Source: Penicillus capitatus
Taxonomy: Eukaryota > Plantae > Chlorophyta
Assembly: GCA_965649825.1 (NCBI GenBank)
Contig: OZ287700.1
Span: 124,001 to 188,000 of the forward strand
Length of the DNA: 64,000 nucleotides
Direction of reading: 5' to 3'
Below are positions 8,985 to 53,710 of the stretch, piece by piece. Both the position numbers and the translations under genes were made by a program. How positions within the stretch are numbered: position 1 is the stretch's first letter; every line of letters starts with the position of its first letter. The notes below the pieces were generated by a model, which saw only the letters and a program-made list of their open reading frames with translations, was not told the origin of the DNA and did no database searches.

Positions 8985-11670
8985 TCACAACTCGTCCTTT
9001 TTCCGATCTCCGCTCTCATCGACCTAAAGCACGTTTCGCAGTTGGTGTCATTGGCCTGTCACATCAAAGGGCCACCTCGATGTCTTTCAGCTCTTCCAAG
9101 TCGATCTCTTCCTCCAATTCCTCTGATGTCTCTTCCATCTGCAGTCCTGGAATCTCCTGCAGGAAAGGTGACATCTCAGATAGGTGGTGGAGAGAAGAGC
9201 CATCCAACTTCGCATGGGTATGTGTGTTCCCGGCCTTGCATGATTCCGTCAAGGAAGTCATTGACTTCACGAAGGTTGGTCTGTCTCTTCAGCGTGGCAT
9301 AACGCAGTTTCTTGGGGCTGAGCACAATCAGCGTCGGGGCATCGCCCTTTCCCACTCCAAATGTGGAAATGAAGTGCGTTGCATCGCCAGCATCCACCCA
9401 GGCAAAGCTGAAGGTACTCGATTCCTGTGTCTTCTGCAGCACAAGGTTTTCGAGCCATTCCATGTGACTCTGGTAGTTCGCCATTTCCCGATTCAGCACC
9501 GCAAACACACAGAGTGGCACAGAGGTATTGCAAGCAGCTGTCACATCAGCATCGGACACAATTCTGGGAACCTCCTTCTTCGCCTCAGGCACAAAGAAGG
9601 GATCCTGGACCTCTGAATGACACACAGACTGCTCCCTTGTGTCACTCTCTCTTGTCAAATCACACCTTTTCTGTCGGTCTTGAGCGTAATGAACAGTGCT
9701 TCGATCCATCCCTTCATGGCTTCAAAGCGCAGGGGGCCTGGATACTGTGGTGCCAAGACCTGCTTTCCCTCTTCAGCTGTTGGATCAAAATACACAACGG
9801 ACAACGCCGGAAGCTTCTTGATCTTAAAATCGTTCCTCAGCGTGGATTCTGTCGCGGGGATGAAAGCAAAATCCGCCTTCCAATGACGTAGGGACATCGC
9901 CAGAGCCGAGAAAACCGACGGACATGATTCAAAGGTCGAAAACAGCAACACCTGTCATCCATTGCGCCATAAGAGGCAGCATGCTTAGACGATGTGACAC
10001 TTTGGGTCTCGGTCTTGCTCCCTCAGGAACATTAACGAATCCTGCCATTGTCCGCGCGTCCACTTTGTCAGGAATGATCTCATTGGCTTCCAACGCAAAG
10101 GACTGGAGTTTCTTGGACTCGAATGCATCACTCGGGTAGGTTTCATACTCGTCCAGTGCATTCTTTTTCACTCCAAAAGGAAATCTCACTATCTATAACC
10201 ACATGGACGCATATCTCCCTTGCTGCAGATGGTATCTATCTGATGCACCGTCATCTGGCAAGGCCGGGTCGCCATGGCAGCGGGATCAATGTCCATGTCT
10301 TCCAGATCGGCATGCTCTGGATGGGCTGTCAGATTGTAGAAGCCGATTCGGATCATTTCCCTGAGTCGCTTGACTGCCTCGTCAAATTCCGTCACATTCT
10401 CAACACAGCGTGTCCCTGTTTCAGCGACAACCCCGATTCGATGAACGATGCCTGTGTTGTTTGGAGAAGACCTTTAGGGTCTGCAAAGAAGGCAACCAGC
10501 CAGATATTCTCATCCACATCGATCTTGTCCAGATCAGCTGCTTCGAGGAAACGCAGTTCGGTGGCGATCTCTGCTTCAGCTGGCGGCACTTCGAGCGCTT
10601 CGTCCAAGAAAGCCATCAGCGCAGTGGCCTTCAGAGGGTCAGAATAACGCAAAACAGCCTCTCCCTGCATCTCAGATCTGTCGCCGTTGTGCAGAATGCA
10701 AAAAAATGCAAAAACCTTCAAAACGAGCAGCGATGGAAATTGCTGTATGTTATAGGCCTCGATGAGTTCACGGTTTGTCCTTGAAGGGATTTCGAAGAAC
10801 GAAGCAAAATCATGATACTTCCACGAGAGGCTTTTGTACAGCCACGTCGTTTCCGTTTTCTCCGTGAACAGCACGACACGTATGGGGTGTTTGCTGCTCG
10901 ATGCCTGCTCCAATGTCTCTCCTTCCTTCATCTTGTAAATGTGTTCATCTGATAAGAGTGACCGAATGGCTCGAGCCATGGCTTTTGCCGAACGATATCC
11001 TGCGAGACATCTCTCGACGGTGCCCTTCGAAACTGAGTCGATCCGTGCGGTATACCTTTGTAGTCCTGTGGATGCGACATGCTTTGCGGGTTGCGCTGGA
11101 CATCTGGTGAAAACAGCTGCGCACAGGTCAACGTGGTATCGTATGTATGGGGACATGTCTGGGATCGTGCCTTGATGGTCGGGAAATCCTTGACTTCATA
11201 TCTTCGACAGATTTCGTGATTGGAAGAGTCGGAACAATCGACAGCAGCCAATCGAATGGCACCCTTCATCGCACTCATCTCCACACGCTCGTACAGAAAG
11301 GAGACACACATACTTCGTAATGCAGTGCCAGTTCTTGATAGGTCGATGAAAATTGCTCGCTCTGTTCACAGTATGGGACGTAGAATAGCACCTGCGAGTC
11401 ATCGATGGTATCATCGACGGTTGGGCAACCACTAATGGAAAGATACATACAACGGAGGCTGTGGCATTAGCCATGAGTGTCTTGTCAAAGGTCTTTATTG
11501 TGAGACTCTCTACTGCATCTCTCTTGGTGAAGAGCTCTTTTCCATCTAGAGTGGCGGCGAGACATGTCCATATCCAACACCCAACTGCGACAAGACGCGA
11601 GAAAAGTGATCCCGTGTCTTCTTTTGATAGACTCTGGGCGTCGAGGCGCACCTAGAAGTCTCCAACGCAT
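8985..11670 (-). CDS. ER-resident multi-thioredoxin-fold PDI-like protein ending in KDEL
   Basis: Several Trx-like segments (AAVDC..EICRRYEVKDFPTIK; FAWVDAG). Last exon reads VDESGDRKKDEL*. Hydrophobic N-terminal stretch; start model tentative. Confidence 0.75.
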
Positions 11671-17186: not shown

Positions 17187-17738
17187 TCTGTTTACTAAGT
17201 GAGAAGTAGAACGTCAAAAAGTGTGTTTGGCTTGTTTAAGGCCAATAATCCGTGAGGCGCAGACAGTCGAGTCCATCAAATGAACAAGTCAATGTATTTG
17301 CGCGAGCACTGGTATTGTCAGCTGTTTTGAATTCTCTGGTTAGCTGATATTCTTTGATTGCTCAAGTTTTTTTGAACGTCAAGTTTTCGATGTAGATGAT
17401 GTTGAGCTTATTGTGTGGGCCTTAACTCATTCTTGTTATCTGACGAACATCGTGTGGGCTTATGTCTAGTTGCTCACACCTATACATGTCTGCTGACTGA
17501 CCGAACATTCGTAGCAGAAAGAGATCTGTGGGGCGATGATGCTAGTCTCGACTCTTTTCTGTTGATGACCTGTTTATTCTGAAAAGAAGGTTTCTGCTTT
17601 CAAGGCAATCTTAGGAAATCGAAATAAGGGCATGATAACGTTCTTTTCCTTGGCTTGTGGATAAGACGTCCGATCTGACCATTGGTTATTGACTGAGGAA
17701 AGAGATTTGATTAGACAACGCTAAAATCGTTTCACACT

Positions 17739-35563: not shown

Positions 35564-38500
35564 TTAATCTTGGTTCTGAGTGCGATCTCGCCTGAGCTTG
35601 TCGACTAAAGATTTCACTTTGGAACGGATCCAACAGGTAAACACGCCAATGACTCCCACGTGAGGACTCAAGCACTCACGTCGTTCGAACAGCTCATGCT
35701 TCAAATACTCAGACGTGAACTTCAAAAGGTACCATGCCAGGACGAAAAAAGTAACGATGTTAAACACGACACATGCAACAGTCAGCAACTCGCGAAAATA
35801 GTTATGCGGAAAGCCTTCATCCTTCAACATACTTGCTGCTAGCGTTGTCATTTGCGACACGAAGAGTGCTGCCACTTCGAACTTGTTCAGCTCATTGAAT
35901 CTTTCGCGGTAGGGCATTGCCAGAATGTGAGCCACGATGGCGAATGCAATAACGCACGCAATACCAGAAATGGGCGTCGCACTGTCGAAACGGTTTGCGC
36001 AGAACGCCAGAAAGGTGACTGCCACTTTTCGCAGCACGACGACGACCTCCCAATAGCGACAACGACCAAGCCTGTATCCCCGAAAGAGAAATCCCATTGT
36101 CTCGAATACCCAGTTACGCGTATCAGCAGGAGGACTGACATCGGCGTCACCATCGGCGCCTTGATCATTGCGTTCGTCGGCTGGGTTTCTGAGTGCACCG
36201 ACGAAGAAAGCAAGCAACCCCAGGTAGACCGGACACACGTAGGAGAGAACAAGAAAGGACTTCAGTCTGCTGTGAACTCCCTCGCCGCACTTGATACTCG
36301 TGTCGACTGCCCAGTAACTCGTCGTGCCATCCGAATCGAGCTCGAGAACGTCGTGCACGTCGACACAGAGGCCGACGCTCAGTGCCGCCTTCAAGACTGG
36401 TACGAATGTGATGTACCAGAGAACCATCACGGAAAGAAGGCATCTCTTTGCCAGATATTGAAAGCGTGCACCAGATTCACGGCGCAACGCATTTACCGTC
36501 CAGAATGCGACCCAGAAAAGGAGCGCAAGGCCAGGAATGACGCAAACGTTGACAATCAGTGCCAGTGCCGTCGAAGGCAAGGACGCGCTGCCCGAACTCA
36601 AGCAGACAATGGATCGGCGATTTCCTTCGGAAGCAAGGCCCCCGATGTACTCTACAAGGAATCAGCAATCGCTCAGTGTGACGCGCAGTTGTCTTAGGCA
36701 GACCTGCTGCCTCCGCCATGAACAGCAGAGGAAGTGCCCAGTCGACATCCAGAGAGACGATCAGAACGGTCATCTGAATGAAGTTTATCGCTATCTGCAA
36801 AGAGGATCGTTCTACAAAGCCGAAGGGAACAGAATCGGACCTTGAACATCTCGACGGCTTTCCACTTCGCAAGGACTTTTGCTGACAGTGCCACTTCTGC
36901 GTGGGTCGAACTCTGCAAAGAGCAACTGAAAATTAAGAGGAAAAAGATGGGTTTGTGCGAGATCACCTCTCCCGTTTCGACAGCTGAAGTATCGATATTC
37001 TTCCTTGCCAGCGAAAGTGTTCCTAGACGAGGTAAGCCGCCACCACTTAGAAGCGCCTCGGTAAGCGTTCCGCGAATCGTAATACCCATCAACATCCCCA
37101 GAAGGCATGCTGACGCCAGAATGAAGGCCACGTTGAGGAAGCTTGGTAAGCATCTCTTGCATCTCGACGATAAACCAGAACTGTAGTCGTCGGCGCAAGC
37201 TCCACACAGAGTACCCTTGTGGCCCTTGCAAAACAGACAATTGAGTGTTCACAGACAGTGTGGCACAGTACCTTTGTACACTGGGTCCGAGTGTAGTCTT
37301 CGATGAATGCTTGATCAAGAACGCAGCTCTTTACATCCTTGGTTAATTTCTTCAGGTTCTCAGATCGCTCTTCGAACTCGCAGGCGTACGTCGTCAGACA
37401 TCTCTGAATCTTCGATGAGCAAGGCGTTCTGTGCCAATAACCATCTTCTGGCAGTATGACAAGAGATTCGCAGTCAGCATTCTCGGGGCAAGGCTTGCAC
37501 GTGTCATCGTTCAGAAGAAGGTTGTAGCTCGTGGTGCTGCAATTAGCACAGAGACCGCCAGAGGACACTACTTGCCCAATGGAACAGTTCTCGACACTCA
37601 CGATGATTTCGATGTCCTCCACAACTGCCCCAATGAACGCAATGGACAACGAGTGATTCCCCGGAGGAACAAAGCCCCGAATACCCGAGAAGCTTGCTTT
37701 TCCTTTCTGGATTGGCTTGATGATTGACCCGATAAGAAAAGTCTCAGGAAACGACATCTTGGCTTCGACTCTCTGAACACCTTCAGGTGGTCCTTGGTCT
37801 AAATCATCGAACAACTGTACTTCCACTGGCGGAAGTTCTTCGCCACTGACATATCCTTTGATCATGACAGACGTCTTTCCAGGAATAGCGACAACTTTAT
37901 CTTTTATTTCTTCGACGATTGCCTTTGCTGCGCAAGTGCCCACGCTTGGACCATAGACCTGTGCAACGTTGTCCTTCCATGCCGGGCAGATGTCGTCGAG
38001 CATTTCCAGTTGGCTCAAGTTCCTCCATCCTGTATTTTGGCGAAGGGAGAATCCGACATCTTCTTCAGAAGTAGCAAAGCAACTGAACAACATAGAGCTC
38101 AAAGAGCCGGCGAAGATGGCCCCTCCGGCAACCGCAGCTTGGTTATATTGAAATGTCGTGTTGACAATGGCGCTGACGGAACAGTTGCCGCTATGCGATA
38201 AACACTTCATTCTCTCTTGGTCGCAAGTGAAATAGAGACCACCTGGTAAAACAAACGATAGTTGTTTGGAATGGAAAGGACACAAATGGTCACCTCCTAG
38301 GTTTGCTGTGTTGTTCAGTACGCTGCAACTGAGTAACTGGACCGTTTGCGATTGATTACGGACGGCTTCGAACGAGACAGCGCCGCCGTTCCCTGTTTTC
38401 GCCACGTTAGCACGTAAGGTGCAGTTGATGCATAGTAAGCTCGACGAATGGTCGCCCTTGATTCCGCCACCGTCGTCGTCTGCCTCGCATCGAACAATGG

Positions 38501-41500
38501 AGAGGCTCTTCCCGTCGAATCGAGTTTCATTCAACCACATGGCGCCGCCGTTCTTGGATCTTCCATACTTCAGCGTGGAGTACTTCATATAGACGGTGCT
38601 GTTTGCCGCTGCAAGCAAACCGCCAGAACTGGCAGCCCGTCCTTTGGATACTGTTGAACGTGAGACGTTCAACGTTGAGTTGTTCGCGAAAATGCAGCCA
38701 CCATACAGCCCGGCACTGTTGTCTGTCGCAGTCGTGTCGACGAAGACCGTCGACGAGTGATACGCGCGTATGAATCCTCCCGCATTCGTAGCGTTGTTCT
38801 TGACAGCCGTTGTCCGATTCAACGTCACACTGGAGATCCAGAGCGAAATTGCGCCGCCGTTAGCTGCTTCATTCCCCGTCGCCGTCGTTCTGTTAAGACT
38901 CGCCGTCGCCGTGTACATGTTCAAGAAACCTCCGTCATCTCCAGCACTGTTGTCTGTCGCCGTCGTTCTGTCAAGACTCGCTGTCGAATTGTCCATATTC
39001 ATGAAGCCTCCGTCTTCTCCGGCACTGTTGTTTCTCGCACTTGTCTCAGACAACGTCGCGCTTGAGTTCACCAGTCGAATGCAGCCACCATACAGCCCGG
39101 CACTGTTGTCTGTCGCAGTCGTGTCGACGAAGACCGTCGACGAGTGATACGCGCGTATGAATCCTCCCGCATTCGTAGCGTTGTTCTTGACAGCCGTTGT
39201 CCGATTCAACGTCACACTGGAGATCCAGAGCGAAATTGCGCCGCCGTTAGCTGCTTCATTCCCCGTCGCCGTCGTTCTGTTAAGACTCGCCGTCGCCGTG
39301 TACATGTTCAAGAAACCTCCGTCATCTCCAGCACTGTTGTCTGTCGCCGTCGTTCTGTCAAGACTCGCTGTCGAATTGTCCATATTCATGAAGCCTCCGT
39401 CTTCTCCGGCACTGTTGTTTCTCGCACTTGTCTCAGACAACGTCGCGCTTGAGTTCACCAGTCGAATGCAGCCACCATACAGCCCGGCACTGTTGTCTGT
39501 CGCAGTCGTGTCGACGAAGACCGTCGACGAGTGATACGCGCGTATGAATCCTCCCGCATTCGTAGCGTTGTTCTTGACAGCCGTTGTCCGATTCAACGTC
39601 ACACTGGAGATCCAGAGCGAAATTGCGCCGCCGTTAGCTGCTTCATTCCCCGTCGCCGTCGTTCTGTTAAGACTCGCCGTCGCCGTGTACATGTTCAAGA
39701 AACCTCCGTCATCTCCAGCACTGTTGTCTGTCGCCGTCGTTCTGTCAAGACTCGCTGTCGAATTGTCCATATTCATGAAGCCTCCGTCTTCTCCGGCACT
39801 GTTGTTTCTCGCACTTGTCTCAGACAACGTCGCGCTTGAGTTCACCAGTCGAATGCAGCCACCATACAGCCCGGCACTGTTGTCTGTCGCAGTCGTGTCG
39901 ACGAAGGCCGTCGACGAGTGATACGCGCGTATGAATCCTCCCGCATTCGTAGCGTTGTTCTTGACAGCCGTTGTCCGATTCAACGTCACACTGGAGATCC
40001 AGAGCGAAATTGCGCCGCCGTTAGCTGCTTCATTCCCCGTCGCCTTCGTTCTGTTAAGACTCGCCATCGACGCGTCCATACTCAAGAAGCCTCCGTCTTC
40101 TCCGGCACTGTTGTGGCTTGCGTTTGTTTCAGACAGTGTCACGTTCGACTTCACCAGTCGAATACAGCCACCATGTTTCTCGGCTCTGTTGTTGACGGCA
40201 ATAATCCGACTCGACGTAGCATTGGAGATCCAGAGCGAAATTGCGCCGCCGTTAGCTGCTTCATTCCCCGTCGCCTTCGTTCTGTTAAGACTCGCCATCG
40301 ACGCGTCCATATTCATGAAGCCTCCGTCTTCTCCGGCACTGTTGTTTCTCGCACTTGTCTCAGACAACGTCGCGTTTGAGTTCACCAGTCGAATGCAGCC
40401 ACCATACCTCTCAGCTCTGTTGCCCATTACAGTAGTCGTCGTGAATTCAAGTTCAGTGTTCACAGCGAAAACACAACCGCCATCCAGCTTGGCGATGTTG
40501 TTCCTAGCCTTCACTTGTTCGAACTTGGCTGTCGAGTCCGATACGCAGCTGAAGCCTCCACCCTGGTCAGCGGCATTTCCAACGAACTCTGAGCCGCTCA
40601 CTGTAAATTTCGACTCTTCGGCGTAAAGACAGGATCCCCAAGTGCCCTTGTTTTTTGCAAATTTGGACTCGGCGATCGCTGCCGATGACTGGACCAGGTG
40701 AATGCAAGTGCCGTTGCCAGCTTCTTTCTCAGTATTCAGTTGATTGTGGTCAAAGGACGCGTTGGACAACGAAAGGGCACCATCACGGATCTGGATAACA
40801 GTGAGGCTGTTATCGGCAGCCTCCAGACCTTCAATCGCTGTGTTGGACGACGTGGAAGCGAACAGGAGGCTCGGGAATCCATCAACGGAGTCGGCCAAAC
40901 GATTCCTCAGCAATCTGATGCCCTCTATTCGGTTCTTCGTTCTGAGTAGAACACCACAGGCTTCGCGCGAGCAGACGTTGTCTGAGATCTCGACGTCGCG
41001 CATCTTCAGCTCAGAGCAGGAAGGGCTCGTCACGCGGAGCGCGGATGCCCCGCTGAGTTCGTTGTTTCGAAAGGCGACGTGGTGCAGCGCCACGAGGCCA
41101 GGCTTTCTCTCGGAACCGCATGCCGAGACTTCGACGATTGCCTGAGCTCCGCGTTCCGACTTAAACGCGCATTCTTCGACAGCGATGTTGGCGAAGACCA
41201 CGTTGTCCGCTCTGAACACACGACGTTCCGCAGAGCGGCAGACTGAGAAATCCTTACCGTGAAAGGAAAAGGCCGTCGTCTTCTTGGGGACACGTGAATC
41301 TCGCTTTCGTCGCGGACAGTGGGAACGCAGAGTCGACGCGACGGGGGTTCTCGACGTATGCGCTGAGTGTAAGATTCCAGGGTAGGGTGACCCGCGACGA
41401 CGGTCGAATCATCTTTGTGGTGTTGAACAGGATGACGTCACCGTTATTCGTGCAGTTGACTATGGACTGCAAATCGTTGGCGACAGCCGCGAGGCCGTCG

Positions 41501-42022
41501 TCGTCTATCAACCATACCCCGCTGTCCGCGGACAAGTGAAGGGGTTTCACATCTTCGTCCTCCAAGGAGCACTTGAAATCTGCAGAGGGCAGAATGCCGC
41601 TACTCGTCACCTTCCGCGAAAAATAAGACGTACCAGAGAGTTGTTCTCTTTCGGTGAGCGCGTCGGTCTGCAACAAGACGCGCGTTTCTTTTGTTTCCTG
41701 TGAGTGAATGCGTTGGACAGTTCGTGCGTGTAGGGTGTCTTGACGCCGTACTGCAGCTGTGTCCGTTTTTCCGTCTTCGGCTTTCACGAAGATGCGAGCA
41801 GGATTCGTCGAGGGCGGCGTTTGTTTCGTGTTCCCGGAGCCTAAGATGCGATGAACTCGTCGACTAAAGTTGACAGAGGCGGATAGCGGTAACGTCACCA
41901 GAAGATGTTTCTACTAACGAGAGCCGACTGGATCGTTTCGAATGCTCTAAGAGACCGGGATGAACCGCACGCGTGCTAACACAGCCGCACAGCAGCAACA
42001 GTAGACGTACAAAGTTTCGCAT
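35564..42022 (-). CDS. Large secreted/membrane adhesin-like protein: signal peptide, Pmp-type beta-helix repeats, Cys-rich region, multi-TM C-terminus
   Basis: MRNFVRLLLLLCG signal; many GG(A/C/F)I...N.A repeats of 25-26 aa; CKPCPENADC..GYWH..C; several hydrophobic helices in 35564-37131; only ~5-6 introns. Confidence 0.8.
38692..40043. repeat. Intragenic tandem array, 387-bp period (129 aa = five beta-helix rungs), ~3.5 near-identical copies
   Basis: ATGCAGCCACCATACAGCCCGG recurs at 38692, 39079, 39466 and 39853; duplicated ORFs in the track recur every 387 bp. Confidence 0.97.
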
Positions 42023-43689
42023 CGTCGAACACTGGACGAACCACATGTGCATCGGCGAATTGTTCGCTTAAAACATGCGCGACAACCTACTAGGCAAGTC
42101 TGTGGCTGATGTGCTTTTCCAGCGCTTGGCATGGAGAATGTCAATTCTATTACTATCATTCAAATCTGAGGACATTCTTTGCTCTTATCTTTGAATGGAT
42201 GGTTTGTCTGTACACATCACGTGCTACCTCTTGGTTAAGTCATGTTTACACGTCAAGTTTGACAGCAGTGACCAAAGAGCAAACAGCTCTGTCATGCAGA
42301 GTGTGGACCTACCTTCGGAATAATGGTCTAAAACACAATAGAAATGGTTCGCTTGATCGACAGGATGCCGATATAAAGATGGTCTGTCCAGTACGATATG
42401 CGGCGGTACACTGGAGGGAGTGATAGGTTTGAAGGATCTGCATGACACGGGACCGTTTCAATATCAACAACCAGCTATTCAAGGGATGCCGTTTCTATTT
42501 GTGACAGACACCCTCGACGACTTTGATCGATAACGAAGGATACTGATTCCAGCCTGCTTTTTCCACAGATTGAGAAAATCGCTAAACTGCATGTTCGGTT
42601 CTTAAAGGCTCTGCTGAAAACCATCGATCACTGGAGTCCAATAATGCTGCGACTGTTGCCGAAACCGCACTGGATCTCACATCAACAGCGCGGAGCATAC
42701 TAAAGGTAGGAGAGTATGTGCTCACCCATCCCTAAACGCATCTCATTACGATCGCGACTACACAAGCATGCAGTTTACACGGTGACATACCTAGTCAGAT
42801 CGGTACACGACTGATTATTCATTGAATGCGACGTCATGAGCAAAGAGTAGTAGTCTGCGAGTCTTACCTGTTTGGACTACAGACATGCGTGATCTTTTCG
42901 GGCCTCTGTACGAGGAACGCCACCAGAGTTAATCCCAGATCGAGTCCACACGAGGCACCTGCTGTTGTTTGAGTCGAGTAATGGCGAATGGCAATTTTCG
43001 GCGTCAGCTTATCGGTCCGGAGTCTTCTCAAGGTATCGAATCCACGAATTCCGGCTCTAACGGACGCGTGGATGACGTCTGTATGATTACATTTCACACA
43101 TGACTCAGTAAATCACAAAGTACACTTCCTAGCGCGTAAAAAGTAGAGGGAGGGCCAACAATAGGCAGGCATGAACTCTTGGGAACCGAACTGTCTTTGG
43201 CATTTGACATCTCTCCTTAATGACCTCGAAATATCACACAAAAGACGACCCAGTTCAGATTCCGGGTAGCTTCTTTTTCGACGTGCTAGTATAGAGGATG
43301 TCGCATTCGTGATCTGCTGAACGTTTTCTTTTCCTCCGAAATCTGCGACGAAAACTCCTCCCTTCTTAAGAGCTCCCGCGACATCTGGACCCTCGTCATC
43401 AGATCGTCGCTAAAATGGTCGCCTCAAGAGTGCGTTGTGTGCTCTATAGACGAAGCGGCCGGGATCCTAGCTCATCCAATGCAGCGCTGCGTTGGAGAAC
43501 ACACCAAGGTAGCCCACTCGCGTAGCGACACATCCGGATCGTTCGTAAACGAAGGCCCACCTTTAAAGCCGGGAAATAGTAAAGACTCCTCCTTCCTAGT
43601 GTAACGGCGAGGCCCATCACGATATCGTAAAATCGGACGCCATCGGACGTCGGACCTTCAACGTCGATGTCAAACTCGGAACCCGACTA

Positions 43690-44264
43690 ATCATGAAAAA
43701 CGGAGAAACAGGTTGTCCGTATAATGCTCTCAATCTTTGCATGGAGACTCTCGAGGCTATGGGTCGATTCTTTATTATCGTTGGCGTGGATCGATTCCTT
43801 CTCGAGAACAGTCTTGTTGTTCTTCGTCTTCGACAACTTCAGAAAGTTTCCAAAGTGTCCCGTCCAGAGTATCTTCATCGAACCTGTAATCTGTTCGTTG
43901 CCTTTGGATGTAACTGTTGCCAATTGCATGCTCTCCGCAACCATGAATGCCTCACAGAAGTCCATTGGAGACAGTCCTTCTCCGAAACGAGATCCAGTGT
44001 ATAATAGAGAAGAGTGCTAAGAAGTATTGTACTAGAAGGATGGCAAGCTTCAGTGTCAGACTTACATATTGCTATGAAGGACCTGAGACTGATACCGACT
44101 GGAAAGACCCAAACGCTTTCGGTCCAGAAAGGTGCATACGGCGATCTCTAATGTGGGCAATCAACGGGTCTCAGAAACTGTGCGAGGAACAGAAATCGGC
44201 GATGCTCGAAATGTGCCTTTTCGTTATTCTGCTCCTGAAAAAATCAAAAGCACTTACTGGTTGA
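43690..44264 (+). pseudogene. Cytochrome P450 C-terminal pseudogene fragment
   Basis: K-helix C-METL[+1 nt]RLW at ~43738-43762; WKDPNAFGPER at 44100-44132; heme motif GLRNCA[frameshift]QKSAMLEM at 44167-44213. Canonical order, frameshifted. Confidence 0.65.
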
Positions 44265-44476
44265 TACATTTCAGAATTTGATTGACAACGTTGTTACGAG
44301 TGCGTTATTGAACGGCAAATGCGGTGTCTAGATCAACATGCTGCCGAGGGAAACATCCTGTTGACTCTTATTATCTCCGGATTTCGGCAACAGTTCGAGA
44401 TGTTTCCCATATCGAAGGCAGTCTAATTGGAAAGCGATCTCAGTAGTGGCCATCGAAACCTACATGATCACTGACG

Positions 44477-45064
44477 TCATAAACCTCTTCCGTCATCTTC
44501 ATCCGAAGTCGGGAAAACCGCTCCCGCTTCCACTCCTCTGCATACAGATAAGAAATGTTCAACTTTGAACACGTTCAGATTCCTGAGCATCACGTCGAGG
44601 GCGACCCGTTCCTTTCGAACTCCCCAGTTCAATTTCCCATTCCTGTTGCAAAGCGTTTTCCAGATCGATGACGACAACGACCTCTTTCACACTGTACCCA
44701 CTCTCTCCATAAATAAATGTCTCATAGAGATCGAATCCCTCCGCCAGAACGACGCTTCGGTGCTGAAGGCGCGATCGAATTGCTCTACTCGTCGTGTTCT
44801 TTCCTTCAAGAATCTCTGCAGATACGTGGGCGAGACGAGAAGGACATCAGGGTTGACGAACTTCCGTTCATTATACTCGCCACAAACAAACGTATCTAAC
44901 ACACATAGAACTTCAAGCAGGGATCGTAGTCCGTTAAGCGTCGATCTCTTTTTTTGACACACATGAGGTCTAACTGAGCGTCGTATCGAAGAAGACAGCC
45001 CCGGGATGTTTTTCCAGATTGCTTGTAGCTCAGGCGTAGGTCGCCTTTTGCCGAGAGCCTTCAT
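44477..45064 (-). pseudogene. Degenerate member D of the XPA-like family
   Basis: Three frames stitch to KERTRR..., RSVVLAEGFDLYETFIYGESGYSVKEVV and VFKVEHFLSVCRGVEAGAVFP, matching the C-termini of members C and E; at least 2 frameshifts. Confidence 0.7.
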
Positions 45065-45608
45065 ACGTGCCTCGCTGAATGGAGGAAACAGCTAAACCAA
45101 GTCAGCAAACTGTACGACAAGAATGTGGTCTGTCATTGAACTTACGATTCACCGAAAAATGATAGTGATTGACGGATTCATATCTGCGGTATGCGCAAGT
45201 CTGCTGTCCCATTACGACACGGTGTCTAGAGAAAGGAAATCTGCAACGTAAAAGCATGCATCCGGCCGATATTGACAGCGAGACATACTGATTCTGCTTT
45301 TACCGTTCCGACTGGACCGTAAGCCCAAGTAAACGAAACAGACGCCATTTAACAAAGAGCTCATCAGATGTGACTGTAGGTTTAAATGCAGAAATTGTGC
45401 TTTCCTTTTGAACGTATTGATAGCAACGACCAACTACAGAAGGAATGTCTTCCGCAAAATAACTTCCATCGTGTCTAGCAGATTAAGCAACAGACATCAA
45501 AAGAAACAAAAGTGCAATGCGACTCTTTCCAGCGTGTTTGACAGAATAAGCGGCAGATGAGTGACGAAAGACGAAACGAAATAATATGACTGACGTGACT
45601 TAATGCGT

Positions 45609-46575
45609 TCAGCGCTGCATTGACTGGACAGATGTCGCTTCGAGCAATCCATTGCGAATCTGAGCAGAGATATCTCCAATGGTTCCTGGCTGATGTGGCA
45701 CGAAAACTGTGCTGTTTCGAGAGGACATGCCAACATCTTTCAGTGTGTCGAAGTACTGTGTCATCAGCATCATGGACAGGATCTCCTGATTGTTGATGTT
45801 CTGAACTTGGGACGAAAACTCCACCACCGATTCTCGCAAACCGGCAACGATGGCCTGTCTCTGACGCGCAATACCCTGACCGGCTAAGAACTTCGCCTCC
45901 GCCTCTGCTTCGGCCGCCTTGACGACAGTGACCTTTTCAGCTTCTGCCTTTTCCACTGCTGCCGCTCGGAGACGGGTTGCTGCATTGATCTCATTCATGG
46001 CATCCTTGACTTTGCGTGCGGGTTCGATGTCTGTGACGAGTGTCTGGACGATGGCAAAGCCAAACGACCCCATGCTCTTCGTCAGTTCTTGCTTGATGTC
46101 TTGTGCAATCTCTTCTTTGCTCACGAAGACATCGTCTAGGTTCATTTTGGGCACCGTCGAACGCACCACATCGAACACGTAACTGCGAATCTGCGAGGTC
46201 GAATCTGTGAGTTTGTAAAACGCGTCGTAGACGTTCTCCTTCAACACCTGTCACGCACACGAAGGTCACAGAGGTTCTTATTCGTGTTTCCGTTGAGATG
46301 TGCCTGGTACTGGACGGACACCACGAGGTTAACGAAAACGTTATCTCGGGTCTTGGTCTCCACGGAGACGTCCAGTTGCTGGATGCGCATGTTCAGTCTT
46401 CCAGCCACAAGTTCCCCTGTGCGTATTCTTGTGACGTGGGCAAGAAGCTGTTAGGAATCTGACCGCATGGAAGCCATATGCAGTTGAAACCGGGATAGGC
46501 GACGCGGGCGAATTTGCCGAACTGTTCGATCACTTCGATGGAGCCTTGGTCAACGCAGGAAAAACAAGCGCCCAT
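45609..46575 (-). CDS. HIR: Band-7/SPFH hypersensitive-induced-reaction (HIR)-like protein, copy 1
   Basis: [22 protein letters not shown]; [11 protein letters not shown]; [22 protein letters not shown]; [11 protein letters not shown]; TQYFDTLK. 3 exons, intron 2 GC-AG. Confidence 0.92.
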
Positions 46576-48285
46576 GTCGACAAAATGTAAAGTCGCACCG
46601 GAAATCCGTCAAAGTCGCCTCGTACCATGCCATGCCTCGATGACGACGGGATGTCGTACGGATGGATAGCTTGCTGCCACCGTCGAAGACGTATTGATGG
46701 TTCTGAGGGTTTTATTGTTCCCTATTCGTTCTTCATTCGCCTTTCCATCTTGTTTCATCGGGACACTGGACTGACTTCGCAAATCATGCATGAGTTGCCA
46801 GTCATGCACTCTGTTCGATGTCATTTCTAGCGCACTCTCATCATCCGTCGACTATCAGCATTCTTGGTTGCCCTCACGATTCTGGAATGAACCAACATCA
46901 ATTGCAGCAGCTGCTGTTGGCGTTTTGCAATCTTTGAACCTGATGAATATTTAGGAGTTTCAATCTAGGTAGTCTCTTTTACTTCTCTGTGAATCTTTCG
47001 ACCAACAGAGTCAGGCAGTTTTCTGTACGAACAACACAAATGTTTAGCCAACTCTCGCTAACGTCCCTATGCTTGTTGGTTTTCTCAGTTAAAGTCGACA
47101 TTGAAGATCCGAGTTACCGTCTTGGCGTTACAGTATCTGTCTAAACAGTGAATTAACTCTTGATCTCGACAACGATCTGGTTATTCGAGCGAAATGGCTG
47201 TTTATTGCGAGTTCTGTAGTGAAAGATAATGTCTTGCTGTTTTATACAGTTAAACATGCCAATCTGTTTTTAGATTAATCATCTAGAATTAACGAGTTGT
47301 CAGCTAGTAGGCTTGAATTCTCTTCTTTGATTTCTTGAAACGAAGACACACCAATTTAGTGTAGACGCGTGGATGGACGTGTCGAGCAGCAAACAGAAAT
47401 GATTACAGGAAACCTACGGTACAAATTGGAAACTTTGAGAGTGCCCTCTAAGGTGATTGTGGTCATGGTGCTATTGACAGACATACAGACATCCAGGAAC
47501 ACTGTCTTTCGACAGAGGCTGTTTGGCTCTTGTGTGCCGAACACACCCCTTCTTACATGAGGAAATAGCTACAAAAGGGGGTTAAACAACCATGCACTGG
47601 TTCATTAGACAGCTAGCTCAAAACAATGCGTTAACGGAAAAGGCCGTTGCTTCTTATTAAGTATCTTTATCGGAGTAGTCGCCTTAAACACTAAGTCCCC
47701 GAAGGTTCTTCGCAATGAGCCAGCTTCACCTCAAAGTCGTCAACTGAGGCATCGACCCGTCGAACGTGTTTTGTTTTGTCCAACGTCTTCGTCGATACCT
47801 CCACAACTCGTATTAGTTAGAAAATAAGACAGGAAGCTCGTGATCCGCTTACTGTTGGAACATGGGTTCCAAATCACGAATGGTTTATTTTCTCACGAAG
47901 TTTGTCTTTAAAATAAGCAACGCGGACCGGTGCTTGGCACACTTCAGCATTAGAAAAAACCCGCAACGTGAGAGAAATAGGTGCTGAAGTATCTCGTCGA
48001 CGAACTTCGAATTTGCTAGTAACTTAAGGAAAGCTAGATATAGTAAGCTAGCTTTGAACCTCTTTCTGCGGAGTTTGTATATAGGTAAGATAGAAACATA
48101 CAATGCAGAGAAGCATGCAGATGCTGAAGTGGGTTGTGATACTACGCAAAACAGTCACTGTCGGCTAAAAAAAGAGTTAGATGTAGAGTACATACGTAGG
48201 TTAAAACGAGGCACCTTATGGAGCAGACAAAAATAAAGAAGCGTTATACAATGATAGTAAAAACTGTCTAGTGTACGAATGAAGT

Positions 48286-48719
48286 GCGATTGATGTTTGG
48301 TGATGGGCAAAAACATCACTCAGGTCGGATCGACAGGCGTCAAGAAGTCGTCGGCGAAGTCGTCACGGACGCGCGGTGGACGGCTGACAAAGTCGTCAAG
48401 AAGTCGTCGGCAGCCGTGGCCGGACGTGCGTGGGGCAGAGGACGCGGATACGGCGAATAGGGTGCGCATATGTTGGAGACAGCGTCTTCTCGACTGTGGG
48501 GATCGACCCGAAGCGGATGGTGCAGTTGGCCAGTTCGAGAAGTACGACCGCGGGGGTTCGATTCCTGCGCCGGACACAGAGGAGGGTAGTCCCATCAGAG
48601 TTGACCCGGATGTGTCTGGCGAGCCCGCGCCGAGTTGGATGGGTTACGGCGGGGAAAGGACAACGTCGAGCCAGTTCGGGGGCCGACGATGGAGTCACCA
48701 CCCGGACAAAAACTTTTGT
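48286..48719 (+). ncRNA. Candidate structured Pol III-like ncRNA / SINE-like element, copy 1 (293-nt conserved core 48427-48719)
   Basis: Inverted copy at 50584-51016; A-box-like TGGTGCAGTTGG 48518-48529; B-box GGTTCGATTCC 48555-48565; TTTT at 48714-48717; several hand-found helices. Confidence 0.5.
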
Positions 48720-50583
48720 TTTTTGGTTTCTAAGTATTCTTACATGCCGAAAATCGAATCAGACCTGTCGGTCTTTTTTCGCGAAATCGTCGAAGTGAAT
48801 GCATTGGAGTTTTCGAAACCTGGATTTACTACACGAGTTCAGATCCTTACAGTTATATTATCTGCGAAAACAAGGCCGGAAAGCAGCAATCTGCGCACAG
48901 AGACTCTAACTTCGACAAGTTCCGTAGCTTTCGTGCAAAGTATTCTTTAGGTTAACGGAAATAGCATGCCGACTCATTTCTTGAAAAGCGTCTCCGTACT
49001 CAGACGGCGTACAAAAAGAGCTAACTCAATGTTGATTACATGCTACTGTCCCTTTGAGTCCATTCTGTCTTTTCGCTATACTCACCTGTTGTCTTGCGAC
49101 GTCGCAGAAGCGGCAAAGCAAAACGCACATCGAATCAGCGAATGACGCAGGCTTTTGCCTACGAGCTCGTCTAGAATTGTGCTCTGTGGATCCCTCACTT
49201 CGCCAATTGGCGAGGCACCACCGACGGAAAGTGAGCACCCAAAAGAAGCCGCGGTAACTCGGTGGACGAGGCTGCCTCAACCGCCCTCCGTGCCAGTTTC
49301 GGGTTAAGGTTGTCCATCGACGTCACAGAAAAAGAGTTGCAGCATCTGATGCTTCTTCGCATTCAATATGTCGTCCAGCCGCAATCCAAATTACCAGGAA
49401 ACACCCGTCCTTCCGAATGCTCGTTTCGCCACGTTTGCTACCTTTTTGCTTTGCTTCGACTGTCCAAGCAATCGGCGTGTCTCTCGGAATAGTCAAGGAG
49501 AATGACCTTTCTGACGACACCCATCTGGACGACACGGCTGCCTTTCATGCGCATTCGACCGACATTTCGACGCGACAGCGTACTAAACGCCTGCGTGGCT
49601 TCATATGACTTCTTTGCGACACCATTCTCTCGCACAGTCGACTTCCTCGCCGATTCAGTTACCGGCATTATCCTATCGATCGTTGCGCACTCTATCTCCT
49701 TCAGATGAGATGACATCTGCCGTGGTTTCTAGAGATTGAACTGGCCGCGTGCTTCATGAGAAATCGCTATCTGCGCGCTAAACCTGTCGACGTCCGTGAC
49801 CAAGTGGATGTCTGCCTGTCCGCTTTAGGGAAAAGATCGTGTAACAGACACAATTCATTTACGAACGTGCTGGTAGTGGCAGTCGTGGCCTAAGGCAGCC
49901 GTGATTGATTGCATCATCGCCCATCCAAAGCATTTCTCTTCGTTCAGCGAAGGACCGAACCTCTTTCATTACTTTAACAAGTTTGCATTTCGCCGAACAC
50001 GCAATCGGTCAATTTTCTTGTGGCCTATTGTTTCCGTTGGCCGTTGCAATTAAGTTGCAGATGCCAAGGAGATCGACGCATTTAAGAGAGAAGGATTTCG
50101 AGAGGATCTTTACAGACACTTTAAGTCTTTAAAAACACAAGTTGCAGCAACACAACAGATGACTCAGGACAATTGGAAGCATGACATTGGTTTGTAAAAG
50201 ATTGTAATCGTATGAGTTCTCAGACACAACAAGAGTGTCGTTCGTCTGTTTTGTGTCATTCGTAATTTATAAAAAGAATAGGAAAAAGACAGGCAGTCTC
50301 GCGAGATGCTAAAAAAGAAAGCGCGAGGCGCATTTGAGTTAAACAAAGAGCTGCCGACATAGTGGAACAGTTCGAAATCACGTGAAACTTTTCAAGATGA
50401 GCAACCTATCATACGGACTCATGCAGCAGCTTAAAAATAGGTTAAACTGGTCAATAATACAGCGTAAAAACAGCATATGTGGTCACAGTGACCAAAAAAC
50501 CGGTCTGCCGAACCTGCAATTTCGTGAGATATGGTCGCGTTTTCCTCGGTTTTGGCCACCTAAAAGGGTCAAAGGAGAAGTGG

Positions 50584-51016
50584 ACAAAAGTTTTTGTCCG
50601 GGTGGTGACTCCATCGTCGGCCCCCGAACTGGCTCGACGTTGTCCTTTCCCCGACGTAACCCATCCAACTCGGCGCGGGCTCGCCAGACACATCCGGGTC
50701 AACTCTGATGGGACTACCCTCCTCTGTGTCCGGCACAGGAATCGAACCCCCGCGGTCGTACTTCTCGAACTGGCCAACTGCACCATCCGCTTCGGGTCGA
50801 TCCCCACAGTCGAGAAGACGCTGTCTCCAACATATGCGCACCCTATTCGCCGTATCCGCGTCCTCTGCCCCACGCAAGTCCGGTCACGGCTGCCGACGAC
50901 TTCTTGACGACTTTGTCGGCAGTTCACCGCACGTCCGTGACGACTTCGCCGACGACTTCTTGACGCCTGTCGATCCGACCTGCGTGATGTTTTGCCTACC
51001 GTCAAACATCAATCGC
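50584..51016 (-). ncRNA. Same element, copy 2 (inverted)
   Basis: Reverse complement differs from copy 1 by 2 substitutions over the 293-nt core and ~12 differences over the 5' ~140 nt. Confidence 0.5.
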
Positions 51017-52435
51017 GCGTCAACTCTTGTCTCGCGACGACCGATTTTCAAGGTCTTGTGTGTGCCAGCTCACGCGGAGAACGATTTTTGTGCTACTCAA
51101 GCGCCTCTTTGTGCTTCAACTAACTGGAGCCTTTTCATTAATTTCGCCGTCCTATTGAATCGTATAAAGTATGCGATTCTAGAGTGTGGAGCATTGAGAT
51201 TTGTTAGCACGAAAATACGGATTTCTCGTTCACAACTTCAAATAACGTAAGAAAGCTTGGTGTTAAAGACAAATTTAGCTTTCCTCTTTCTTCTTAATGC
51301 TGAGAGTCTATGAAGCTTTTCACCACAACATATATTGAGCGGTTTACCAAATTCAGTGACGACTGCAAGCTTTGAACAATTTATCTAGATCATTTACTCG
51401 AAAGAATCGCCACTGCGGTGTTTACGCGATCGACCAAAAAAGACAACGAACAAACTGATGCTGGAATGCCCTCTGCAATGCGAAGACTCGAGAATATCTT
51501 GTGTTTCGCACTCGGATGTCGCTGTCAGACAACATGACCTATAATGCGTTACATTTTTTTCTCACATCGACAAATGTATCCGACGCCGAAGGCAGCCCCA
51601 CAACGGAAGATCCAATCCTTTTCACAGAACCGGGGCCTTTTGCGAATGATTGTGGCAACTGAGAGTCCCATGTTCGTTGTCTTTGCGCACCAAACCTCTG
51701 CCGTTAGTTTGAGGACGATTCTTTCCATTCTCTGTATTCTTCGACGATACGAATATATTGCGAGTGACACCAAACAGAGTCAAAGTTTCTGTCGGCAAGT
51801 TTGAGGTGCCGATGTGACTGTCTTGTTTGGGAGGGGGCCACTTTGCTCTGGGACACTCGGGGTCGTGTCGTTTGAGGTGTTGGGCCGGAAAGAGGCCTTT
51901 TTCTCTGGTCCTGGAGCGGTGCTGAGTCACCTGCCTAGGCATGTCACGTCACAACGGGGGTATTTGAATGGACAATCCGAACCATGTTTACCTTGCTCCA
52001 AACAGTTGTAATTCAAGTCTTCCGCTGTGTCTTTCGTCCGGCCCGATCGCCGACAGTTTCGTCTTCGTGCACGACATGCAGATCCATCCAGTTTATAACC
52101 CGAACAAGGATACATTGTTCAACCGAAAGACGACGGATCAATCATTGAGTGGTAAAAATCCTGTGACGTTCTCGAAGCCAAAGTACTGGCGACTCAAACG
52201 ATGACGTCAAGATATCTGTATGACATCTTGCTGTCAGAAAAAAAACCGCCTGAAAATGCGAAGTCGTAGAGAATTAGAACACCTAGATCCAAGGAATTAT
52301 ATTCTTCATTTCTCTTTTACATGACTAACTACGGTCTTGACAAAACACTTGTTTTCATCAATCCATTTAATAAAAGATGGATCACAGCACTACACGACTT
52401 TGAAAAATCTCCGCTCGACTTTGCATTTCAACGGT

Positions 52436-53395
52436 ATGGGCGTCTTTTATTCTTGCGTCGAACAAGGCTCCATTGAAGTGATCGAACAGTTCGGCAAGTT
52501 CTCCCGTGTCGCCTATCCCGGTTTCAACTGCATATGGTTTCCATGCGGTGAGACTTTTAACAGCTTCTAACCCACGTCACGAGAATACGCACAGGAGAGC
52601 TGGTGGCTGGGAGACTGAACATGCGCATCCAGCAACTGGACGTCTCCGTGGAGACCAAGACCCGAGATAACGTTTTCGTTATCGTCGTCGTCTCCGTCCA
52701 GTACCAGGCACATCTCAACCGAGACGTAACCTCTGTGACGTACGTCTGCGCTGCAGGTGTTGAAGGAGAACGTCTACGACGCGTTTTACAAACTCACAGA
52801 TTCGACCTCGCAGATTCGCAGCTACGTGTTCGATGTGGTGCGTTCGACGGTGCCCAAAATGAACCTAGACGATGTCTTCGTGAGCAAAGAAGAGATTGCA
52901 CAAGACATCAAGCAAGAACTGACGAAGAGCATGGGGTCATTTGGCTTTGCCATCGTCCAGACACTCGTCACAGACATCGAACCCGCACGCAAAGTCAAGG
53001 ATGCCATGAATGAGATCAATGCAGCAACCCGTCTCCGAGCGGCGGCGGTGGAAAAGGCAGAAGCCAAGAAAGTTAGTGTCGTCAAGGCGGCCGAAGCAGA
53101 GGCGGAGGCAAAGTTCTTAGCCGGTCAGGGCATTGCGCGTCAGAGACAGGCCATCGTTGCCGGTTTGCGAGAATCGGTGGTGGAGTTTTCGTCCCAAGTT
53201 CAGAACATCAACAATCAGGAGATCCTGTCCATGATGCTGATGACACAGTACTTCGACACACTGAAAGATGTTGGCATGTCCTCTCGAAACAGCACAGTTT
53301 TCGTGCCACATCAGCCAGGAACCATTGGAGATATCTCTGCTCAGATTCGCAATGGATTGCTTGAAGCGACATCTGTCCAGTCAATGCAACGCTGA
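52436..53395 (+). CDS. HIR: HIR-like band-7 protein, copy 2 (inverted paralog)
   Basis: [22 protein letters not shown]...; same intron positions as copy 1; intron 2 (52708-52756) GC-AG. Confidence 0.92.
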
Positions 53396-53710
53396 ACGCA
53401 TTAAGTCACATCAGTCATATTTTTTCGTTTTGTCTTTCGTCACTCATCTGCCGCTTATTCTGTCAAACAAGCTGGAAAGAGTCACACGAGTTCTTCCTTT
53501 GGCTCATGACCTTATTTCTAAGCAGGATGGATAAAGGCACACATTTTTCTTTTGGCTCAGACGCCTTTGTTTCAAAACAAACAGGACAGTAACAGGCACG
53601 TATGTTATGGGAATGGTTTATACTAACTTTGGTTGCTGTTATCTCGTTGCTTAACACAATGACGCATTTTTTGCATTTACGGAATCGCGTTTGACAACAC
53701 TATCTGCTAA

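Follow-up and report, generated by a model that had tools for sequence, protein, structure and literature searches.

The 64-kb window, by which we mean the whole stretch of DNA analysed, contains a short element in two copies that form the convergent arms of a local inverted repeat. These arms are nested in a larger inverted duplication that includes both copies of an HIR/band-7 gene. The features on which the analysis draws, with positions counted within the window, are as follows.

45518–46617, minus strand: left HIR/band-7 gene segment (PF01145), the outer part of the larger inverted duplication
48284–48719, plus strand: left arm, by alignment one complete family copy with upstream motif region and core
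48346–48408, plus strand: two degenerate modules (consensus ...TCGTCGGCGAAGTCGTCAC...) that together hold four AGTCGTC motifs and resemble a promoter or a subterminal repeat region
48427–48719, plus strand: 293-nt block, with 2 substitutions relative to the right arm
48484–48719, plus strand: family core of ~235 nt, a putative transcribed small RNA, with 88–100% identity across 16 retrieved copies
48518–48529, plus strand: A-box-like TGGTGCAGTTGG, which fits the consensus TRGYNNARNNG
48555–48565, plus strand: B-box-like GGTTCGATTCC, a motif match
48570–48621, plus strand: long hairpin (helix 5), in which RNAalifold extends the stem 48570–78/48611–19 to 13 pairs
48714–48717, plus strand: T4 run where family homology stops sharply on the 3' side, a putative Pol III terminator
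48720–50583, no strand: 1.86-kb spacer between the arms with no recognisable gene, in the opposite orientation in contig ctg339858
50584–51020, minus strand: right arm, the second family copy, with its core at 50584–50819
52395–53486, plus strand: right HIR/band-7 gene segment, 93% identical to the left segment

The left arm measures 436 nt and is about 96–99% identical to the reverse complement of 50584–51020. MAFFT alignment of the two arms traces the homology from ~48280/51022 up to exactly 48719/50584, and a repeat search gives a length of 410 nt and an identity of 98% for the whole arm. A 436-nt inverted repeat of such identity is far beyond what chance would be expected to produce. The original prediction had singled out 48427–48719 as a block that differs from the reverse complement of 50584–50876 by two substitutions, and alignment confirmed this: within the block, the arms differ at 48568 (C versus T) and 48649 (G versus T) and nowhere else. 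The poorer conservation claimed for its 5' flank was likewise borne out, with about 11 mismatches and one 1-nt indel in the outer ~143 nt of the arm (48284–48426). On each side, 1.4–1.7 kb lie between the HIR gene and its arm; these spacers fail to align with one another, as had also been noted.

The A-box-like TGGTGCAGTTGG, the B-box-like GGTTCGATTCC and the TTTT run are found at 48518, 48555 and 48714, exactly where they had been placed. By motif matches, the element carries an A box, a B box and an oligo-T run, the three parts expected of a type-2 gene of Pol III. The gap between the two boxes is 25–26 nt, ~7 nt below tRNA spacing. In copies of the right-arm type, the T4 run doubles as half of a palindrome, GGACAAAAACTTTTGTCC.

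We compared the window with two contigs of the ENA metagenome assembly ERZ25074695. Window positions 35609–49504 are identical to ctg339842, which terminates at 49504, within the spacer between the arms. A break inside the spacer is of the kind expected if the reads hold both spacer orientations. The second contig, ctg339858, has coverage similar to that of ctg339842 and matches the window collinearly, at 88–99% identity on both sides; we take it to be the other haplotype or else a closely related strain. The outer flanks of its arms correspond to the left and right outer flanks in the window, and its inner flanks are swapped. Thus, the 1.86-kb spacer is inverted relative to the window. Four variants are common to both ctg339858 arms and absent from both window arms (at 48425–6, 48442 and 48460, together with an extra A after 48529). 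Because the arms are alike within each haplotype and the spacer is inverted, the two-substitution identity of the arms reflects gene conversion or recombination between them. The near-identity of the arms is therefore concerted evolution and not ultra-conservation. The two haplotypes are separated within the 293-nt block by 3 substitutions and 1 indel (~1.4%), which falls within the between-haplotype background of 0.7–3.6% in the flanking alignments nearest the arms. The argument from ultra-conservation that had been built on this pair consequently fails, given the variants shared within a haplotype, the inverted spacer and a between-haplotype divergence at background. The near-identity of two paralogous copies is no evidence here of selective constraint, and the pair is less exceptional than it looked because its ultra-conservation is recombinational.

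Inverted repeats are known to mediate inversions by non-allelic homologous recombination, as in the flip-flop of the plastid inverted repeat and in human inversions flanked by inverted duplications. The window pair has the same hallmarks: inverted arms of ~436 nt that are homogenised within each haplotype and more alike there than between haplotypes, an intervening segment that occurs in both orientations, and breakpoints inside the arms. Unlike in those examples, the arms here are short, and each belongs to a dispersed family. The locus illustrates cleanly how a short inverted repeat can undergo concerted evolution and give rise to structural polymorphism beside a duplicated HIR pair. The last exons of the two HIR/band-7 genes (45609–46247, minus strand, and 52757–53395, plus strand) differ by 2 amino acids and ctg339858 encodes exactly the same two HIR proteins, so the HIR copies are also kept alike. 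The HIR protein is nearest to that of Caulerpa lentillifera (86%), followed by those of Ostreobium (77%) and Bryopsis (73%), which places the host in the Bryopsidales, an order of siphonous green algae.

The ORFs of the window spacer gave no match to Pfam. The spacer of ctg339858 carries a 5.6-kb insertion at window ~50064–50068 (L001 1350–6990) that encodes reverse transcriptase (RT), RNase H and integrase and appears to be of Ty3/gypsy type. The alignments that flank this insertion overlap by 5 nt, which looks like a target-site duplication.

All reading frames are largely open across the GC-rich core, and gene callers therefore place spurious ORFs on the element. We used these ORFs as search proxies and then fetched their contigs for DNA copies. 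The sense-frame ORF returned 7 further ORFs and the antisense ORF returned 4. The description of the element as present twice holds for the 64-kb window, which has these two copies only, but not for the genome: at least 14 paralogous copies were recovered on about 10 contigs from the same alga (order Bryopsidales). DNA copies lie at loci L006 (two copies), L007, L008, L012, L013 and L015, at the allelic loci L009 and L011, and at the allelic loci L010 and L014 (two copies). Two additional copies are marked by the proxy ORFs P0126 and P0133. When the core proxy peptide was used in an exhaustive HMMER search, a further two close ORFs appeared, along with about 16 ORFs that form a diverged clade. 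The proxy ORFs also include a diverged subfamily that is homogeneous and has at least 9 members. The diverged clade (P0137, P0141, P0142 and P0144–P0155) lies on ENA contigs of 55 kb to 4.1 Mb and is represented by proxy ORFs alone. The presence of proxy ORFs on many large contigs suggests that there are dozens more copies, and the total copy number could be high enough for a transposable element. A profile of the family searched with nhmmer found no further diverged copies in the window and L001–L012.

The family units are ~270–440 nt long and lie at unrelated loci in a non-tandem arrangement, such that the sequence common to different loci is the element alone. The copies show subfamily structure, and two of them, L011 and L015, are decayed. 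Many copies are solitary within 20 kb, and local inverted pairs occur at three loci (the window, L006 and L010/L014), with the members 2–9 kb apart. The L006 pair (873–1157 and 10046–10387) is divergent with its members 9 kb apart, and the L010 pair (10125–10400 and 17374–17648, with its allele at L014) is convergent with its members 7 kb apart; one of the three pairs is thus divergent and two are convergent. Within-pair identity at L006 and L010, upstream regions included, is 94–97.5% and exceeds the identity between loci.

A scan of prokaryote genomes with a 26-mer from the core gave one match, in OZ245997.1 (L012, 4485–4829). This is a full copy that includes the upstream motif region, and it is the sole match outside the ERZ25074695 assembly. 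OZ245997.1 is a 6.9-Mb record labelled 'MAG: Putridiphycobacter sp.', in which local ORF density is low and GC content is 44–51%, values that look eukaryotic. It is probably mis-binned or chimeric algal sequence. Degenerate peptide seeds and a 20-mer retrieved no copy from JGI metagenome contigs, and viral contigs likewise gave none. As far as the searchable data show, the family appears to be specific to the Bryopsidales alga.

Every DNA copy that we read is preceded by a cluster of 3–5 AGTCGTC motifs in the sense orientation, and there are no such clusters elsewhere in 266 kb. The distance from these motifs to the core varies by ~45–95 nt between copies, which is unusual for a fixed-distance promoter element. 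An A box, a B box and a run of at least four T at or just after the end of the core are present in 15 of the 16 retrieved copies. The exception is L011, which has lost the B box and the terminator; in every other copy the B box reads GGTTCGA(T/A)TCC. The first T-run is broken in L008 and L012, and each of these copies has another run of at least four T within ~20 nt. In most comparisons, the 3' boundary of pairwise homology falls a few nucleotides from the T-run, and in some it lies 13–350 nt beyond. The 5' boundary is fuzzy: measured from ~48454, homology starts 0–95 nt farther upstream in comparisons between loci, and as much as 174 nt farther upstream for the window pair. The A box sits ~60 nt inside the conserved unit and not at its 5' end.

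Indels of 1 nt and 5 nt separate copies, and a 1-nt indel separates alleles; one 1-nt indel, directly 3' of the A box, recurs between subfamilies and between alleles. Because these indels shift the frame between copies and between alleles, the element is non-coding, and a protein-coding exon was rejected on the 1-nt indels, which fall at several columns. Both substitutions between the window arms are non-synonymous in each open frame checked. The original proposal of a discrete unit that is non-coding, carries A and B boxes of tRNA type and ends in oligo-T is supported.

We assessed constraint on the core in three pairs of copies whose flanks had been duplicated along with the copy. Core and flank identities are 96.7% and 83–84% for L008 versus L009, 96.2% and 66% for L006b versus L013, and 98.3% and 85% for L007 versus L013. 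The core has thus changed 4–9 times more slowly than the co-duplicated flanks, and the copies predate the segmental duplications. The slower change of the core points to constraint, but either selection or ectopic gene conversion could cause the contrast with the flanks. In the allelic comparison of L009 with L011, the core differs at least as much as the flanks (count on alignment A3). This result and the losses in L011 count against uniform constraint.

For the 293-nt block, the predicted folding energy of the sense strand is −120 kcal/mol (z = −2.2 relative to shuffles), whereas the antisense strand does not fold better than its shuffles (z = −0.6). The four helices originally proposed by hand are indeed complementary (48514–22/48696–704, 8 of 9 pairs; 48525–31/48681–87, 7 of 7; 48549–55/48563–69, 7 of 7; 48570–78/48611–19, 9 of 9), and the substitution at 48568, which had been said to keep its pair, is wobble-compatible. 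The RNAalifold consensus has 11 helices and no helix joining the 5' and 3' ends. In this model the B-box strand pairs with 48503–48510 in an 8-pair helix, and there is no T-arm or T-loop. Across the alignment, 98.5–98.9% of cells are paired and most stem substitutions are wobble-compatible. The DNA copies contain a single compensatory pair, in helix 5 (column 88/141), where the right arm has U-G, and L012 U-A, in place of C-G. Covariation, which the original prediction had proposed to examine in related algae, was not significant on the retrieved copies, with 82 of 500 and 79–209 of 500 shuffles reaching the observed values, because variation among the copies is too low. Conservation is uniform over predicted loops and stems.

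For the diverged clade, we back-translated unambiguous codon positions in the proxy ORFs, so that the following statements refer to deduced positions and not to DNA. Helix 5 would contain a second compensatory change, from A-U to U-A. The 3' end of the element would also be conserved, with the clade reading SPPEQKLLS where TCACCACCCGGACAAAAACTTTTGTCC gives SPPGQKLLS. In one diverged subclade, about 38 nt spanning the A-box hairpins appear to be deleted and the B box appears to be changed, and the boxes may therefore not be an essential part of the element.

Searched at gathering thresholds, Rfam gave no match in the window, L012 or six loci, with 131 kb of related sequence covered besides the window; two copies searched at E ≤ 10 gave chance fragments only. 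A divergent SRP- or MRP-class RNA, one of the identities first suggested, is accordingly unsupported. ARAGORN reported no tRNA or tmRNA in the window or L012, and no tRNA covariance model matched 48200–48900 at E ≤ 10, which upholds the claim that the element is not a tRNA. Among the fragments, a weak, gapped match to snoZ40 (snoRNA Z40) at 48291–48318, at the outer margin of the left arm (E = 0.19; 44 positions of the model absent), was judged to be chance, as was a tmRNA T-arm fragment at E ≤ 10. Hammerhead and other ribozymes, H/ACA and C/D snoRNAs and Sm-class snRNAs were rejected for lack of motifs and of Rfam matches, and a solo LTR was rejected on the inverted pairs, the lack of a TG...CA terminus and the fuzzy 5' end. 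A sigma-70 promoter and terminator scan is uninformative for a eukaryote.

The explanation that we consider best, and hold at slightly less than even confidence, is that the family is a lineage-specific, multicopy set of Pol III-type small-RNA genes. Each unit has three parts: an upstream region of ~100–150 nt, loosely conserved and built from repeated (A)AGTCGTC motifs; a highly conserved, GC-rich core of ~235 nt with good folding potential and tRNA-type A and B boxes; and an oligo-T run at which conservation stops. We infer that each unit is transcribed by RNA polymerase III, with a start ~15–25 nt upstream of the A box (~48495–48505) and an end at 48714–48717. The predicted RNA would be ~210–235 nt long, and its head is probably tRNA-derived. 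Transcription, the polymerase, the RNA ends and any cellular function are in this account deduced from sequence. The genes would have spread by DNA-level duplication, with selection, gene conversion or both keeping the core similar. The copies in the window are the arms of a local inverted repeat that recombination and gene conversion keep near-identical, and recombination between the arms has flipped the 1.86-kb spacer in the other haplotype.

We favour the small-RNA explanation because of the contrast between core and flanks, the stop of conservation at the T-run, the replacement terminators and the AGTCGTC clusters specific to the copies, and also because homology extends beyond the putative transcript and target-site duplications are missing. 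Homology beyond both sides of the putative transcript, together with the missing target-site duplications, fits DNA-level duplication rather than retroposition. Vault RNA and 7SL genes are multicopy Pol III small-RNA genes with internal boxes and upstream elements. The family resembles them in having a unit of a few hundred nucleotides, internal A- and B-like boxes, upstream motifs, an oligo-T run and members that are kept similar. It differs in that it has no sequence or structure match to them in Rfam and in that the spacing of its upstream motifs is not fixed. If transcribed, the family would provide a new abundant small RNA, absent from Rfam, in a poorly studied algal order. A fuller version, to which we give considerably less credence and which we regard as rather doubtful, describes undescribed structured Pol III small-RNA genes of Bryopsidales that are tRNA-derived, have a ~235-nt fold and form inverted pairs that drive polymorphic inversions among haplotypes or among the nuclei of the coenocytic thallus.

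A SINE-like repeat is a close rival of a small-RNA gene family, although we consider it on balance unlikely. The element would then be a tRNA-derived SINE or other non-autonomous retroposon, transcribed by Pol III from the internal boxes and copied by a partner reverse transcriptase. Its core and 3' hairpin would have been kept because active source copies need them, and the pair in the window would go back to an old insertion that became part of a local inverted duplication. Dispersal to unrelated loci, division into subfamilies, A and B boxes inside the unit together with a T-run, and the decayed copies L011 and L015 all agree with this, as do the proxy ORFs that suggest dozens of copies or more, including the diverged subfamily of at least 9 members. 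Some SINE/LINE pairs have reverse-transcriptase recognition hairpins at the 3' end, and the 3' terminal palindrome of the element resembles these.

Other properties are difficult to reconcile with retroposition. No target-site duplication of at least 8 nt was found at any of 11 copies, in that no flank k-mer of this length was shared beyond chance, and there is no A-rich or simple-repeat tail. Homology extends 50–170 nt upstream of the core and, in some pairs, up to 350 nt past the terminator; the A box lies ~60 nt inside the unit; and the core has changed 4–9 times more slowly than co-duplicated flanks. None of the three allelic pairs examined shows an insertion polymorphism. The suggestions of an undescribed Pol III RNA and of a tRNA-derived SINE, both offered in the original prediction, remain the leading ones, but the description of such a SINE as young is weakened by the missing target-site duplications, by homology beyond the start and the terminator, and by copies that predate segmental duplications.

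SINEs have been defined as interspersed, non-tandem repeats of <1 kb with at least 60% identity to tRNA, 5S or 7SL RNA over at least 60 nt (SINEBase, PMC3531059). The family is short, interspersed and non-tandem. Of a tRNA, it shows motifs resembling the D arm and the T arm only. No tRNA, 5S or SRP model matches it at E ≤ 10; these are covariance models and not pairwise identities, and the absence of a tRNA match indicates that the family probably lacks the 60% identity over 60 nt required by SINEBase (PMC3531059), which also weighs against a tRNA-derived SINE. At least 14 paralogues were retrieved, with about 20 further proxy ORFs. More generally, SINEs show target-site duplications and homology confined to the transcript, and the family shows neither. 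Green-algal tRNA-derived SINEs are present in SINEBase (PMC3531059). With tRNA-derived SINEs, the family shares the form of a short interspersed repeat, internal tRNA-type A and B boxes, a non-tRNA body, subfamilies and a 3' oligo-T. It differs from them in lacking target-site duplications and a tail, in a tRNA-like part that lies away from the 5' end and is not recognised as a tRNA, in homology outside the putative transcript, in a core more conserved than the flanks and in demonstrated copies numbering in the tens. If the family is a SINE, it becomes a matter of routine repeat annotation for Bryopsidales genomes. The family can credibly be proposed as a lineage-specific Pol III RNA or SINE family that has not been described before.

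We consider it improbable that the element is a low-copy DNA repeat with no stable RNA that ectopic or intrachromosomal gene conversion keeps similar, and that may act as a TFIIIC-binding (ETC-like) boundary or as a recombination substrate for inversions. Concerted evolution is directly visible at the window locus, the inversion breakpoints lie in the arms and inverted pairs recur at three loci; conservation that is uniform over loops and stems, with covariation that is not significant, is also as expected for such a repeat. However, conversion alone leaves unexplained why conservation stops at the T-run in nearly all pairwise comparisons, why broken T-runs have replacements and why only the sense strand folds better than its shuffles.

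Far less probable still is that the arms are the terminal inverted repeats of a MULE-, hAT- or CACTA-like DNA transposon, with AGTCGTC as the subterminal transposase-binding repeats. Such an element would account for inverted pairs 2–9 kb apart at three loci with greater identity within pairs than between loci, for repeated short subterminal motifs and for internal sequences that differ between loci, as in Pack-type elements. However, in two of the three pairs (the window and L010/L014) the sharply bounded ends are turned towards each other and the fuzzy ends lie on the outside, where terminal inverted repeats would show the reverse; no target-site duplications were found, no transposase gene was seen in any spacer and many copies are solitary within 20 kb. 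We rejected a terminal-inverted-repeat or MULE-like transposon on the orientation of the sharp ends and the missing target-site duplications.

Least probable of all is a divergent version of SRP RNA, RNase MRP or RNase P RNA, U3, telomerase RNA or 7SK, for which a size of ~230–290 nt, a T-run end and GC-rich helices are in the right range but which gave no Rfam family at E ≤ 10 beyond chance fragments, has a predicted topology without a 5'/3' terminal helix, and is a poor fit to at least 14 and possibly dozens of copies in the case of single-copy MRP, RNase P and telomerase RNA.

Several minor observations concern the surroundings of the copies. A gene block that is 95–97% alike is present at L007 (1–4626) and L013 (14759–20109). 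It lies on opposite sides of the family copy at the two loci (L007 10220–10491 and L013 10170–10439) and in opposite relative orientation, an arrangement that may represent a second rearrangement involving a family member. Segmental direct duplications are found near copies at L009 (5803–8524 and 17756–20457) and L010 (450–2833 and 18173–20567); they carry trypsin/ankyrin and RPE65-like genes, and the region is rich in local duplications. In the window itself, tandem repeats with a period of ~387 nt and 96–99% identity are found at 38691–40422, within a 1376-aa ORF at 37089–41219 on the minus strand.
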